From Diadema antillarum (Eukaryota): a DNA stretch of 64,000 nucleotides. Position 1 is the first letter of the stretch, and the number at the start of each line of letters is the position of its first letter. Both the position numbers and the translations under genes were made by a program. The stretch covers positions 1,364,001 to 1,428,000 of the forward strand of contig NW_027271061.1 of assembly GCF_040938485.1 (NCBI RefSeq). Reading direction: 5' to 3'. Positions 45,608 through 58,363 of the stretch are shown here, in pieces. The notes under the pieces were generated by a model, which saw nothing but the letters and a program-made list of their open reading frames with translations, was not told the origin of the DNA and ran no database searches.

Positions 45608-45876
45608 TCAGAGCTTGGTCTTCTCTTCCGCCGTCAGGGCCTTGATCTTGTCGTTGTAGTGCTTGGACATGAGTACCATTGTGATGATGAGAAGGGCACC
45701 GAGCGCGCAGCTGACGGCGATCAGGGCGATCTTGAACGTTTCTGCCTCTTCCTGAGCAGCGTCGATGCGCTCCAGCACCTCGGTGTCGAGACGGTCATCC
45801 CCGCCGTCGGGTCCCTCCGTCGGGTCGGGCTCCTCCGGCATCATCATCATGTCTTCCGTCATCGTCGACGCGTACG
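45608..45876 (-). CDS. Met-rich gene exon 13: stalk, transmembrane helix and 18-aa cytoplasmic tail
   Basis: ...IALIAVSCALGALLIITMVLMS-KHYNDKIKALTAEEKTKL*; phase 1 start. Confidence 0.9.
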
Positions 45877-48800
45877 CTGGGAGGAAAAAAAAACCGCATA
45901 AAAAAAAATCAATAACTGAAATTAAGATAATCTTGGAAAAAGGTATTTTAAACAGCTTGTAGCTATAACAGCTAGGTTTACTACCAACATTATTCATTCT
46001 TTTTATGTATTCCTTGGTAACAAGGGTCCTTCCCGCTAACTAGAAACCTTACCCGGGTCGTACCCAGCATACCAACAACTGATACTGCAGCATGATTCTG
46101 AGAATGGAAATTCACTGATTATTCATATCCATAAATTTGGAAATACAAATTATAGTTATGATGATGATCATATTGATTTGATTTAATTTTACTGGAAACC
46201 ACATAAAAATGCTACACATCATCATGCCTAGATACATGGTATAAAAAAAACAAACGATACGGAGAATGGAATGCTTTGAGAAGGGGAAATTGGAGCTGTT
46301 ACCTGCTAGTGACAGTGACCTCTGCAAACAAATGATGATGATAAAAATAACTTTACTTCTTACCAATAATAATCATTTTCATTTGCTGCGTTATCATTTT
46401 CATCACTCTCACTAAGGCTGTTACTATCACTGTGTTGTTTTATTGTCCCATTATTATCCCTCTTCTCCATCTCTTCTTCCTCCTTCTAATCATCATCACC
46501 ATCATCTCCTTCGTCATCACTGAGAGCCTTACCTGGTATGAAAGTGTAGAAGGCCTTGAAACCGAGATCCTCGGTGGCATAATCCGACTCGAACTTGAGG
46601 TGCAGATGCTGCCCGCTGGACCGGAAGACGTGAGGGATCATGGTTCCACAGAACGACTTGTCCCCGAGCTTTTCCCACCCGTCCTCGGTCTTGTCATAAA
46701 TCTACGGATAGACGGAGGGAGATGGGGATATAGCCACAAACTGTATTCTAGCGAGGGTGTAACATTTCGTAACGATCAGCGCGTGATTATAGAAGTGTTG
46801 CCTTTTGTAACAGCACAATTATCAACACCTTCTCCGCGGCACATGGAGCATGGGTACAGTGGAGAAATTCATGTTTCGTTCTCCTTCTCTAACTCCTCCC
46901 TAATAAACATACAGTAAGTAGAAACAAGTGAGTCGCATATTGAATGGGCACAGTCATTCATGATTTGGTTTCTTTTTTTTCTTTCTTTTTTTTTGCCATT
47001 CATCACGCTTGTACATTCACTGGAGACTTACCGTGAGGCTGTCGTGCATACACTGCGATTGCCACTGAGTGCGGAAGCGCAGCATGTAGACCGCCACATT
47101 GTGTCCAGGGGGCGCCACGAGATAGTGGTTGCACGCCACGTTGCTCGGGTAGTTCATCGGGAACATTGGGGAAGAGATGTGTCCGGGTCCACTAGTTATC
47201 GTCTCGTCACATGAATAGCCTGCAGAAAAAAGAATGGTTCGAAAAAGAAATCCCTTAGGTACACTTCACTATAATTATGACTAGAATTAATCATAATCAA
47301 CATACACATTTACGTATTACACTTCATGTTCATCTTGAACACCAACTGCAGAGGAGAACATTTCTATAGACAGCTGTTTTCGGCCTACATTAGTAATTTA
47401 GGATTTCATATTTCTGCTTGGATGCCTTAGTAGGGTAAGATTTCCGTAATAATGTATCACCTATCAAAAAGAATAGTTTGCAAGTTATATATTTCTCAAC
47501 CAAAAATCACGCACTGGTAACACTATGAACTCTAATTCACACTCATAAAGTAATGATTTCATATTATTTTATTATCAGCACATAATATTTTCATGGTTTA
47601 ATGGAGAGAGGAATTATTGAATAAAGTACACGATGCAGGAACTGGGCCCTTGTTGAAATGAAATAAACATGTCATTAGCAGGTTTGCCTAGGTCGTCAAG
47701 ACAAGTGCAGTCCCTCAAGTATATCACAGAACATAACTTGCGTTGGGGGCTCTAAATATGGTATTCTAGAATACAAATCCCTTTCAGGACAGTGAATACG
47801 TGTTACGTTAGAAACACTAGCAAACACAATGAGGTCTTTGCACTGAGGACTGCTAAGAGCATATTTACGTACGCTTTGTTGCGCCGTGGTATATTGCGAT
47901 ATAAAAGAAGCATTCAAAATAATGGAAAAATGTTGCGTTAGGAAGATCTTTCATGCGAAAAAATGTCGATGGTGCTTGTACTATGAATACGTGATCGTTT
48001 AATGAGTGTATTACCTGATCCATACTCCATGACGACACCAAGGTATTGTGCCTTGGTGGAGTACTGGTCGATGAGGGCGTGCGAGCCTTCCACAGCCACT
48101 ACTGATTCCTTGTGAAGCTCACTGAGACAGTGCGCTACTCCCCGTCCTTCTTTCGACTTCAGCTTCATGACAACCTTCTTCAGTTTGGCCATCAGGTATG
48201 CCTTCATCTCCATGGTAATCTCCTCACCCATGCCCTGGTCGTCCTCCATCTCGTCATCACCTTCCATCATCCCTCCTTCTTCCATCATAGCTTCCATCAT
48301 CATTCCCATTTCTCCGCCCATCATCCTTTCCATCATCTCACCCATCATCTCGCCCATCATTCCTTCGCCCATCATCATCTCGGACATCATCATCATCTCA
48401 TTATCCGTTTCCATGTAGCTTTCCTCCATTTCTTCGTCACCGGCCATCCCGCCAGTCATACCTTCGCCCATCATCCCTGGCTCTGACTCCTCCATGCCCT
48501 TCATGCTCTTCAACTTGTGCAAAATGTCCAGAATACCCGGAGGCAACATTGACAAGATATATTCCTCAAGCTTTTCTCCCATTTCCTCTTTATCCATCTC
48601 GCCTTGGTAATCCTTCATCATCTTCATCTTTTTCATGATTTTACCCAACAGCATCTCCAAAGGAGGAAGGTATCCTCCGCGAGCGACCATTAGCCCAAAT
48701 TTTGAGTGGATGTTGTTGCAACTGAAAGGTCCTCGTGAATCCAGAACGCGGAAGTGGAGCTTGTTGGTGGTGAGCGGAGACTGCATAATTGTCCACTTGT

Positions 48801-57800: not shown

Positions 57801-58363
57801 CTTTACGTAGTTTCCTTTCACGCTTCATTTGCAGTGGCTCAGAGGGAAAAAAAAGGGATCGCAATGTGCTTTGTTTGCCCATTTTTCCCAATGTCGGGGA
57901 AAAAGAAGGCAAGGTTCAAATCGTGACTTTCGTTTCCATTGAATTTCTTTTAGAACCTCTCTTGATTTTTTTCTCTCTTATTTGTGCTGTGTTTGTTTTC
58001 GTCGGGTGGCCGAAGATTGGCCGTATTTGCTACAGCACAAATGAATTGAATGCATGATCTAAAAGTGATTATTATCTAGGTAGAATGTAATATGATTATG
58101 TAACGCTGAAATGCAGAAATCAACTGAGAACAAAATTGCGTGTGAGTGCAGTTGTACTTACATTTTTTTCCACGCCAATTGTATGCATTTCTCAAAGTTG
58201 TGTTAGAAGGAGATGTTAAGAGTCACGTGATCAACTTACTCTGATACATAAACATGAATTTGCTCAAGAAGCCGTCATCCAGCGCTGAGCTTGTTCCGGC
58301 CAATGAGAGAAAGGCTACCATAACTGTGAACATGGCCACGTGCCTCCAAGAAAGACCCGACAT
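45608..58363 (-). CDS. Methionine-rich mosaic type I membrane protein: SP - inactive trypsin-like domain with embedded WAP - LDLa - PAN/apple - Met-rich region - CUB - TM; 13 coding exons, about 1622 aa
   Basis: All 13 exons have AG/GT sites and compatible phases; CDS totals 4869 nt from ATG (58363) to TGA (45608); domain motifs listed per exon. Confidence 0.85.
46533..46701 (-). CDS. Met-rich gene exon 12: CUB C-half
   Basis: IYD...FCGTMIPHVFRSSGQHLHLKFESDYATEDLGFKAFY; phase 0-1. Confidence 0.92.
47032..47219 (-). CDS. Met-rich gene exon 11: CUB N-half
   Basis: SCDETITSGPGHISSPMFPMNYPSNVACNHYLVAPPG...QCMHDSLT; phase 1-0. Confidence 0.92.
48015..50024 (-). CDS. Met-rich gene exon 10: 2010-nt exon encoding a 670-aa Met-rich region
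   Basis: ccaacag|CT CTC...TCA G|gtaata, phase 1-1; about 138 Met by hand count; 9 NxS/T sequons. Confidence 0.88.
50797..51222 (-). CDS. Met-rich gene exon 9: PAN/apple-like domain with Met/acidic insert
   Basis: SPQECALSCLKAPFLCSGFDVY...[MNNSMMDSMMEAEGMMMEEEEDD]...MLCVL; phase 1-1. Confidence 0.78.
51497..51613 (-). CDS. Met-rich gene exon 8: LDLa domain
   Basis: QCQMGEFSCGDGWCVPEDQRCDGKKDCTLGTDEHFC; phase 1-1 (absent from ORF track). Confidence 0.9.
52075..52246 (-). CDS. Met-rich gene exon 7: trypsin-like C-part (GDKGGP)
   Basis: GDKGGPLVASVNGQWYVLGVTSLPYGCLYKGSPGLYSHVFGLGDWIK; phase 0-1. Confidence 0.9.
52497..52680. repeat. Compound (TCT)n/(TAT)n/(CAT)n intronic microsatellite
   Basis: Visible triplet runs in the intron between exons 6 and 7 of the Met-rich gene. 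Confidence 0.9.
52906..53588 (-). CDS. Met-rich gene exon 6: trypsin-like LH..IPL...C...LICAG plus about 180-aa Met/Glu/Gly insert
   Basis: VLHKYKIPLRDADSCKMSFNGDLPDSLICAGG...MMQGQCM|gtaaat; phase 1-0. Confidence 0.88.
53972..54085. repeat. Compound (GATA)n/(GA)n/(GACA)n microsatellite
   Basis: Visible tetranucleotide and dinucleotide runs. Confidence 0.9.
54247..54378 (-). CDS. Met-rich gene exon 5: WAP four-disulfide core
   Basis: SCPAVEGSILDECDRECEEDDDCMGEKMCCSNGCGMACMAP, 8 Cys in WAP spacing; phase 1-1. Confidence 0.88.
54759..55066 (-). CDS. Met-rich gene exon 4: trypsin-like middle (YDVAL, ACLP)
   Basis: YKVVVGTT...IHVHPYF...YDVALVRV...VNVACLP...VVASFG; phase 2-1. Confidence 0.9.
55226..55258 (-). 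CDS. Met-rich gene exon 3: 33-nt microexon
   Basis: ctaag|C AAT GGT GTC ACC ATC CTT ACA AAC AGC ATG TG|gtaagt; phase 2-2. Confidence 0.6.
56206..56443 (-). CDS. Met-rich gene exon 2: CG.RP pro-segment, Met-rich insert, trypsin-like N-part (TAASC)
   Basis: CGHRP...AAEGEFPWQAAIF...CSGVLIHEEWVLTAASC; phase 1-2. Confidence 0.9.
58240..58363 (-). CDS. Met-rich gene coding exon 1: signal peptide
   Basis: MSGLSWRHVAMFTVMVAFLSLAGTSSA-LDDGFLSKFMFMYQ|gtaagt (phase 1); acceptor at 58393 implies an upstream UTR exon. Confidence 0.82.

Follow-up and report, generated by a model that had tools for sequence, protein, structure and literature searches.

The closest described relatives of the protein reported here are the membrane proteases of the S1 family, in particular enteropeptidase and matriptase, which display a trypsin fold at the cell surface together with CUB and LDLa modules in the stem; the group with which we compare it also includes prostasin, tryptase-gamma and testisin, which are type I or glycosylphosphatidylinositol-anchored. 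We describe a gene of the sea urchin Diadema antillarum, on the minus strand at positions 45608-58363 of a 64,000-nucleotide stretch of contig NW_027271061.1 (NCBI RefSeq assembly GCF_040938485.1, contig positions 1,364,001 to 1,428,000; hereafter the window), which likewise combines a trypsin fold, LDLa and CUB at the cell surface, but in a protein that is saturated with methionine and whose protease fold is predicted to be non-catalytic. In accordance with this likeness, NCBI has named N-terminal fragments 'tryptase delta-like' and 'serine protease 27-like'. The differences are nevertheless considerable. Type II transmembrane serine proteases are recognized by an N-terminal signal anchor and a C-terminal catalytic domain, whereas the Diadema protein has neither and shows the reverse topology, with the protease fold at the N-terminal, distal end and the anchor at the C-terminus (transmembrane helix at amino acids (aa) 1572-1590 of 1611). 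Furthermore, in contrast to the membrane S1 proteases, its catalytic triad is dead, it has no activation site, a WAP domain and a 180-aa insert lie within the fold, and a Met-rich region of ~600 aa has no counterpart among them.

Two other groups of described proteins share single features with this one. Serine protease homologues, such as the arthropod masquerade/SPH cofactors, the beta chains of vertebrate HGF and MSP, and haptoglobin, use a catalytically substituted trypsin fold as a binding module and place it beside other modules. The relationship ends at the fold, however, as these proteins are secreted, have no domain inserted in the fold and carry no Met-rich loops. Methionine clusters exposed outside the cell are found in the ectodomain of Ctr1 and in bacterial CopA/PcoA and CueO, and we take the DMGMSMGMDMDMGMGG-type stretches of the Diadema protein to resemble the Met/Gly/Asp repeats of CopA/PcoA and CueO. 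Again, there is no homology, no transporter or oxidase domain is attached, and the Diadema protein has ~230 Met against roughly a dozen in Ctr1. By composition only, the Gly+Met tandem units and periodic Met-Asp motifs are also reminiscent of abductin and the mollusc reflectins (reviewed in PMC9779258), but abductin is a secreted ligament protein and reflectin an intracellular platelet protein, neither being a modular membrane protein, and homology to either was rejected as no search returned a sequence match. The Diadema protein is thus set apart from the characterized membrane proteases and pseudoproteases by its reversed topology, the domain inserted in its fold, its lineage-specific region of ~600 aa and its methionine load. 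An earlier reading of this DNA, made from the sequence only, knew of no described protein with this architecture, and we agree: the relatives that we retrieved are automated 'uncharacterized protein' models from Strongylocentrotus purpuratus and Lytechinus variegatus, so that the protein is already in the databases, yet undescribed.

Gene model and the non-catalytic protease head

To assemble the gene, the minus-strand open blocks between 58363 and 45608 were listed, phase-compatible donor/acceptor pairs were enumerated and the best chain was taken. Splice-site enumeration and translation in this way gave a coding sequence of 4836 nucleotides (nt) in 12 coding exons, encoding 1611 aa with a stop at the terminus only. 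The sequence-only reading had proposed a complete gene of 13 exons and about 1622 aa; completeness and the exact start (58363) and stop (45608) are upheld, while the exon count and length are corrected here. The model matches, residue for residue, the first 267 aa of NCBI model XP_071490222.1, followed by four residues and then XP_071490203.1 (aa 272 to the end), and thus the same splice sites were picked independently by the NCBI pipeline; the largest exon is 100% identical to XP_071490203.1. The order of modules is a signal peptide, a trypsin-fold pseudoprotease with the WAP domain and an insert of ~180 aa inside it, LDLa, a PAN-like module, a 671-aa region, CUB, a transmembrane helix and a cytoplasmic tail, encoded as follows.

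Exon 1, 58240..58363, minus strand: start codon and signal-peptide-like N-terminus (MSGLSWRHVAMFTVMVAFLSLAGTSSA..), ending in phase 1; same start as XP_071490222.1.
Assembly gap of 138 N, 57438..57575: within intron 1, non-coding.
Exon 2, 56206..56443, minus strand: Met/Gly/Glu/Asp-rich insert at the position of the zymogen activation site, then the start of the trypsin fold with LTAASC; Pfam Trypsin E 9.2e-09.
Exon 3, 54759..55066, minus strand: N-terminal beta-barrel of the trypsin fold with YDVALV, ending ..ASFGDPMMAMK; Pfam Trypsin E 1.6e-08, profile positions 54-129.
Exon 4, 54247..54378, minus strand: phase 1-1, WAP domain with eight Cys; Pfam WAP E 2.7e-10; acceptor common to the NCBI models.
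Exon 5, 52906..53588, minus strand: trypsin segment (..IPLRDADSC..LICAGG), then the helical insert of ~180 aa, ending ..QGQCM before the Ser195 motif.
Exon 6, 52075..52246, minus strand: C-terminal end of the trypsin fold with GDKGGPLV, aligned to GDSGGPL.
Exon 7, 51497..51613, minus strand: phase 1-1, LDLa with six Cys and acidic calcium cage (DGKKDCTLGTDE); Pfam Ldl_recept_a E 1.2e-09.
Exon 8, 50797..51222, minus strand: phase 1-1, a module resembling PAN/apple, with four conserved Cys and a loop insert rich in Met and acidic residues.
Exon 9, 48015..50024, minus strand: phase 1-1, 671-aa lineage-restricted Met-rich region.
Exon 10, 47032..47219, minus strand: first half of CUB; Pfam CUB E 4.6e-06 for this piece.
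Exon 11, 46533..46701, minus strand: second half of CUB; donor CAG/GTAAGG (exon/intron).
Exon 12, 45608..45876, minus strand: juxtamembrane linker rich in Met and acidic residues, then the transmembrane helix (FKIALIAVSCALGALLIITMVLM), a cytoplasmic tail of 20 aa with T-K-L at its end, and stop.

From exon 4 onward, each module occupies one phase 1-1 exon or a pair of 1-0 and 0-1 exons with the same net phase, which is the classical exon-shuffling footprint of extracellular modules. An alternative acceptor for exon 4 at 54426 was dropped, as the NCBI models and the orthologues use 54378. The assembly gap lies wholly within intron 1, which spans 58239 down to 56444, at a distance of 664 nt from the donor of exon 1 and 994 nt from the acceptor of exon 2. 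The join between exons 1 and 2 (..FMYQ-N-HSTCG..) is identical in the NCBI model of this contig, in the model on a second D. antillarum contig and in Diadema setosum, and it is collinear in L. variegatus; in addition, tblastn searches of the window with both orthologues found all exons in order and none extra. A hidden exon inside the gap is rejected on these grounds and, with the join conserved, the reading frame is unaffected by the gap. Three more assembly gaps are present in the window outside the gene (2303-2435, 10084-10221 and 39843-39994). Within the introns we noted an (ATAG)n microsatellite in intron 4 (53972-54056) and long TTA/CAT-type simple repeats in intron 5 (52496-52677).

The treatment of this locus in public annotation merits closer attention. 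NCBI presents this contig's copy as two genes broken at the junction of exons 4 and 5 (54247-54378 / 53588), namely XP_071490222.1 (268 aa, 'tryptase delta-like'), which reads through the exon 4 donor, and XP_071490203.1 (1340 aa, 'uncharacterized protein'), which begins at an internal Met of exon 5. This split could be taken to mean that the protein is an annotation artefact, made of two separate genes or of a decaying pseudogene with ATG-rich microsatellite expansions as its Met-rich stretches. The only D. setosum model in the database, an N-terminal one of 233 aa that stops by reading into intron 3, would fit that explanation, as would the short tandem DNA repeats that constitute several of the Met-rich stretches and a TAG that this haplotype carries where exon 11 would be extended by read-through. 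We consider it highly improbable. The NCBI split cuts a single trypsin fold in two, with exons 2-3 covering Pfam profile positions 7-134 and exons 5-6 the rest, whereas the allelic contig and both orthologues each have one continuous model. The 2-kb exon is open in one frame only, the 4.8-kb coding sequence has no internal stop, 92% of the cysteines are conserved between Diadema and S. purpuratus, and the TAG lies beyond a strong donor that the NCBI model uses as well. Because the split divides one fold that is continuous in the allelic contig and in the orthologues, the single gene proposed by the sequence-only reading stands, and NCBI's two models on this D. antillarum contig should be merged.

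On the second contig of this assembly the gene is represented by one model of 1652 aa, XP_071509747.1, which differs from ours by 21 substitutions and one 41-aa segment. We infer that this contig represents the other haplotype, because the D. antillarum assembly amounts to 1.73 Gb against a k-mer haploid estimate of 0.70 Gb, with 84% duplicated BUSCOs (benchmarking universal single-copy orthologues) and 2.5% heterozygosity (bioRxiv 10.64898/2026.05.24.727502). The 41-aa segment, which is acidic and lies between CUB and the membrane, results from use of a downstream exon 11 donor in XP_071509747.1. In the window haplotype this read-through meets an in-frame stop (TAG, 46486-46488) shortly after the exon 11 donor, and the form with the 41-aa linker therefore cannot be made; our model, like that of NCBI, uses the strong upstream donor.

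The trypsin fold is matched by Pfam PF00089 (E 1.8e-31) in two stretches, and a PDB search placed tryptases and the light chain of enteropeptidase (E 5e-24) closest among solved structures. Alignment to enteropeptidase bears out the proposal of the sequence-only reading that the protease is dead: TAASC stands in place of SAAHC and GDKGGP in place of GDSGGP, such that His57 is replaced by Ser and Ser195 by Lys in Diadema, with Asp102 retained (DVALV). Position 57 is Ser in the orthologues too, and position 195 is Leu or Met. At the site of zymogen activation, where Arg or Lys would be followed by IVGG, Diadema has ..DMDYGAAEGEFPWQ and the orthologues E-VVAGEYPW, without a preceding basic residue. 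Because His57 and Ser195 are both replaced and there is no activation site, the fold is predicted to be unable to act as a protease and is classed as a pseudoprotease rather than an S1 enzyme. A single gene encodes this surface protein of predicted type I topology, with its non-catalytic protease fold.

The architecture of this head is itself unusual. In alignment to solved proteases the first stretch ends just past the equivalent of AGWG (ASFG) and the second starts at the Cys before the Ser195 motif; between the two, all of it extra or remodelled sequence, lie the WAP exon, the ..IPL..C....ICAG segment and the helical, acidic insert of ~180 aa (22% Met). Chymotrypsin numbering suggests that the WAP exon is placed in the region of the autolysis loop, and the WAP domain and the insert would both flank the former substrate cleft. 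The WAP assignment of the sequence-only reading is secure (PF00095, E 3.9e-08 to 2.7e-10, 40.8 bits against a cut-off of 20.8; eight Cys), and the insertion point is the same in three species. Carried on a phase 1-1 exon, the WAP domain has entered a loop of the trypsin fold, a clear case of domain insertion by exon shuffling. At the DNA level, exon 5 is also tandemly repeated at 53055-53176, in units of 27 and 9/18 nt.

With an intact eight-Cys WAP domain held in a dead protease head, at a point common to three species, the protein might be a membrane-tethered protease decoy or inhibitor that traps trypsin-like proteases in their active form, or their substrates, with Met-rich loops that serve only as filler the protein tolerates or as modulators sensitive to oxidation. 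Inhibition of serine proteases is known for WAP proteins such as SLPI and elafin, pseudoproteases are commonly binding partners in protease cascades, and enteropeptidase and tryptases are the nearest solved relatives. On the other hand, many WAP domains are not inhibitors, which weakens the analogy, and filler would not keep its Met composition across ~33% identity. Moreover, isoform X2 of S. purpuratus (XP_003728847.1) lacks exactly the equivalents of exons 5-6, that is, the second half of the protease and the Met-rich insert, and joins WAP straight to LDLa in frame, as skipping exons 5-6 is frame-neutral; with the rest of the protein kept, the head may be dispensable. On balance a decoy function appears unlikely to us, although better placed than an annotation artefact.

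The remaining modules were largely as the sequence-only reading had named them. LDLa (PF00057, E 8.1e-07 to 1.2e-09) has its six cysteines and acidic calcium cage CQMGEFSCGDGWCVPEDQRCDGKKDCTLGTDEHFC, and CUB (PF00431, E 1.1e-19) covers profile positions 1-110 of 110. The module in exon 8, at most a putative PAN domain, has four conserved Cys in a PAN-like pattern; its only Pfam match is a sub-threshold one for the S. purpuratus sequence (PAN_1, E 0.047, 14 bits against 21.4, profile positions 11-40 only), the Diadema and L. variegatus sequences have none, and a profile search of exon 8 against PDB sequences gave only unrelated matches at chance level, one of them acidic and of low complexity. 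The prediction of a type I membrane protein is well founded, since the N-terminus resembles a signal peptide, a lone strong hydrophobic 19-mer (aa 1572-1590, hydropathy peak 2.7) forms a single transmembrane helix, and 14 of the 15 N-x-S/T sequons fall on the extracellular side. The tail ends (window 45608-45625) in -TKL in Diadema, -TKF in S. purpuratus and -TKL in L. variegatus, the terminal T and K being invariant in the three species while the rest of the tail diverges. Class I PDZ ligands have the consensus S/T-x-hydrophobic, and the T-K-[LF] C-terminus, which fits it, is a putative ligand of this class.

Methionine-rich segments and their conservation

Typical animal proteins contain ~2-2.5% Met. 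In the Diadema protein Met makes up 14.3% of all residues, some six times the usual level, and 20.6% of the 671-aa region of exon 9, which is far beyond chance; the figure of ~20% for the large exon given by the sequence-only reading holds, with the correction that this exon is the ninth and not the tenth. Eleven Met-rich segments, 665 aa in total, contain 28% Met and 15% Gly; a further 14% is Glu and 10% Asp, and the net charge is -112. They are found at the N-terminus of the protease, in the exon 5 insert, in the PAN-like loop, in several loops of exon 9 and in the juxtamembrane linker, which confirms that Met/Asp/Glu/Gly inserts sit in loops of otherwise recognizable domains. Within exon 9, conserved helical and beta blocks alternate with low-complexity loops of Met/Gly/Asp/Glu (MMGGD six times, MMGE repeats and a run of six Met). 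The underlying DNA repeats are a 15-nt unit in 6.3 copies for MMGGD, units of 12/24/36 nt for the MMGE-type repeats and (CAT)6 for the six Met, and part of the Met excess in Diadema comes from local tandem duplication of units of 12-45 nt.

Searches matched for length with the full-length allele identified two orthologues, each with Trypsin, WAP, LDLa and CUB and each labelled 'uncharacterized' in the database: LOC586735 (XP_791598.3) of S. purpuratus, with 1442 aa and E 1e-211, and LOC121428837 of L. variegatus, with 1497 aa and E 2e-207. Identity to Diadema is ~33% by local BLASTP and 37-39% in a three-way alignment, and the proteins are collinear over 88-92% of their length. The dead triad, the WAP insertion point, the positions of the inserts and the C-terminal T-K-[LF] are common to the three full-length proteins. 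The orthologues differ in being less rich in Met (8.5-9.1% overall against 14.3%; 11.5-13.3% in the exon-9 region), and the loops of these camarodonts are more Asp-rich. Relative to them Diadema has ~220 extra insert residues, partly tandem repeats, and Diadema-only insert columns are 21% Met. The sequence-only reading had allowed that this might be a characterized family whose members share the inserts; the orthologues do share the Met-rich inserts, and none has a known function.

At the level of single positions, 51 of the 174 Diadema Met positions in ungapped columns are also Met in S. purpuratus, where 15.6 would be expected by chance, corresponding to a positional conservation of 29% for Met, 56% for Gly and 92% for Cys. 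Methionine composition is thus kept more than methionine position, which we read as a sign of selection on a bulk property. Because orthologues at ~33% identity stay Met-rich and share Met positions above chance, the composition would appear to be selected rather than accidental.

To assess the distribution of the Met-rich region, 1.84 billion representative proteins were searched exhaustively with exon 9 (phmmer), which gave four matches. One is the protein itself (the 1340-aa model). Another (P0002) is a 664-aa open reading frame (ORF) from an ENA assembly that is 46% identical, is followed by a CUB exon on its contig and represents a fourth species, with MGGD-type repeats at the same site. 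A 584-aa ORF comes from a strongylocentrotid-like read set, in which the exon structure around exon 9 is also conserved. The last (P0004), a 77-aa ORF of MIGGD repeats on an unrelated ENA contig of 678 nt, aligns with exon 9 at its MMGGD repeat (E 3.9e-04) and is probably a low-complexity coincidence. A profile search with exon 9 and a search with exon 9 of S. purpuratus found nothing outside echinoids. By these matches the gene appears conserved and restricted to sea urchins among the proteins searched. A full-text literature search for the orthologue identifiers found no paper, a search for Met-rich sea-urchin proteins found none, matrix and adhesive proteins included, and a search for expression information, including a general one for copper-response lists, found nothing relevant.

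Possible roles of the methionine-rich segments

The sequence-only reading suggested a scaffold that chelates metal or buffers redox chemistry, or an organizer of a biomineral or adhesive matrix, all of which we treat as analogies. We favor, at a probability of roughly 0.3, the view that the protein is a non-catalytic surface scaffold whose Met/acidic loops capture soft metals, namely Cu(I), together with divalent ions on the carboxylates. In this proposal, protein partners would bind to LDLa and CUB, which depend on calcium, and to the remodelled protease/WAP head, while a PDZ scaffold would hold the cytoplasmic tail. Some 40% of the ectodomain would then be presented as acidic, thioether-rich loops and helices (28% Met, net charge ~-112), in which the Met-rich segments would capture soft metal ions, Cu(I) being the likeliest, and the carboxylates Ca2+ or Cu(II). 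Such capture would buffer the metal at the membrane or pass it on. Peroxide would inevitably oxidize the same thioethers, and a single property may thus underlie both the capture of metal and the sensitivity to oxidants. The analogy draws on Ctr1, where Met-only motifs are selective for Cu(I)/Ag(I) (PMC9117721). There are 31 triplets of the form MX1-2MX1-2M in Diadema, and the orthologues have 8 and 7; ~0.08 would be expected in a typical protein, and shuffles of the same composition as the Diadema protein give 16.0 +/- 4.9.

Several observations weigh against metal capture. The excess of triplets mostly reflects the clustering of Met. Compared with shuffled sequences, Met-Met spacing is enriched at lags 1, 4, 5 and 6 in Diadema, corresponding to tandem units of 4-5 residues, and at 7 (plus 1) in the camarodonts, whereas the Ctr1-type lags 2 and 3 (MxM, MxxM) are not enriched anywhere (z 0.0 and -1.5 in exon 9). 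The spacing of 7 in camarodonts points to Met-lined amphipathic helices instead of flexible metal-binding strings. The Met-rich segments contain hardly any His or Cys, residues that often join Met in copper sites, and the tandem duplication seen in the Met stretches could be slippage that is tolerated in loops. Without Ctr1-type spacing and with little His, a simple copy of known copper sites is argued against; the heptad-like spacing of the orthologues nonetheless appears to keep Met-lined helices in play. Predicted structures are too poor to show any metal site: AlphaFold2 gave the exon-9 region (five-sequence alignment) a mean predicted local distance difference test score (pLDDT) of 41, with a helical bundle at residues 33-171 scoring 60-70, and the N-terminal half (three-sequence alignment) a pLDDT of 31, which is unusable, because the alignments are shallow. 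A Foldseek search of the exon-9 model against the PDB returned generic helical bundles with a best E of 0.17, which we rejected as meaningless, and sequence and profile searches of exon 9 against the PDB gave nothing below E 0.05.

The same thioethers invite a second explanation, in which exposed Met residues serve as sacrificial or reversible targets of H2O2 or hypohalous acid, for example at the egg during fertilization, on coelomocytes or in the gut, and in which sulfoxide formation would protect the membrane or alter the conformation and binding of the scaffold. Sea-urchin eggs make H2O2, which hardens an envelope of CUB and LDLa proteins, and switching by Met oxidation is known in chloroplast Hsp21 and calmodulin. 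The Met-rich segments, at 28% Met, are extracellular and strongly acidic, and so solvent-exposed; the retention of composition over position (29% of Met positions shared) fits a bulk chemical property; and the Met-lined helices of the camarodonts, with their spacing of 7, would lose amphipathicity when oxidized. This explanation meets a problem of recycling, however, as no extracellular methionine sulfoxide reductase system is known in animals, and a sacrificial sink would leave the conserved pseudoprotease, WAP, LDLa, CUB and PDZ-type tail unexplained. We rank an oxidant sink or redox switch below metal capture, as a possibility to be held loosely, and the two are not mutually exclusive.

Of equal standing to the oxidant explanation, and similarly tentative, is a structural or adhesive role, in which the Met/Gly/acidic segments would be elastic spacers and hydrophobic contact faces, the modules would organize a matrix, an adhesive or a mineralizing surface, and metal and redox chemistry would be incidental. 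Abductin is a Gly/Met-rich elastomer and SRP54 has a Met-lined groove; by analogy, the Gly+Met tandem units (MMGGD x6, MGMD, MMGE) resemble elastomer repeats, and the acidity (net -112) is typical of calcium-binding matrix proteins. The heptad-like Met spacing in the orthologues suggests helix-helix packing, and the long helical bundle that AlphaFold2 places in exon 9 (moderate confidence) is in line with this. The membrane anchor and PDZ-type tail, in contrast, are unlike secreted matrix proteins, our searches gave no similarity to abductin, reflectin or the sea-urchin spicule matrix proteins, and the absence of Met-rich sea-urchin matrix or adhesive proteins from the literature search also speaks against such a role.

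Returning to metal capture, a broader formulation joins it to the oxidant chemistry. The protein might be described as a sea-urchin thioether brush, a receptor-like scaffold in which hundreds of extracellular Met are carried on a frame of dead protease, WAP, LDLa and CUB and are coupled to an intracellular PDZ scaffold, such that the brush would sense or buffer Cu(I) or oxidants at a membrane facing seawater. We offer this speculatively, placing it behind metal capture as such and ahead of the oxidant and structural explanations.

Neighbouring loci and biological significance

Elsewhere in the window, a large gene of MAM and LDLa repeats occupies 38-22845 on the minus strand (MAM matches at 786-1289, 4679-4930, 15867-16283, 21439-21690 and 22417-22725; LDLa match at 5318-5698), with possible further exons at 29624-29800 and 32563-32646; the tblastn searches with the orthologues gave LDLa-like matches near 29.7 kb and 32.6 kb. 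Within the span of this gene, on the opposite strand, lies a retroelement with a 578-aa ORF that contains a reverse-transcriptase domain (5791-7524, plus strand; Pfam RVT_1, E 3.7e-33). An intronless 379-aa frame for a rhodopsin-family G protein-coupled receptor (41700-42836, plus strand; Pfam 7tm_1, E 2.3e-44) lies downstream of the Met-rich gene, ~2.8 kb from its 3' end.

Extracellular proteins with 14-20% Met across hundreds of residues are very rare. That such a composition is kept at ~33% identity between two distantly related groups of sea urchins argues that the methionines themselves may be the function. If these residues bind copper or answer to oxidants, the protein would provide a tractable model for the way in which peroxide or a highly toxic trace metal is dealt with at the surface of a marine animal, one that is testable in echinoid embryos, in which knock-down and knock-out methods are established. 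It would also offer a natural template for thioether-based metal-binding materials. Should the protein indeed act as a thioether brush, it would represent a new class of extracellular, methionine-based metal or redox device with no counterpart in other animals.

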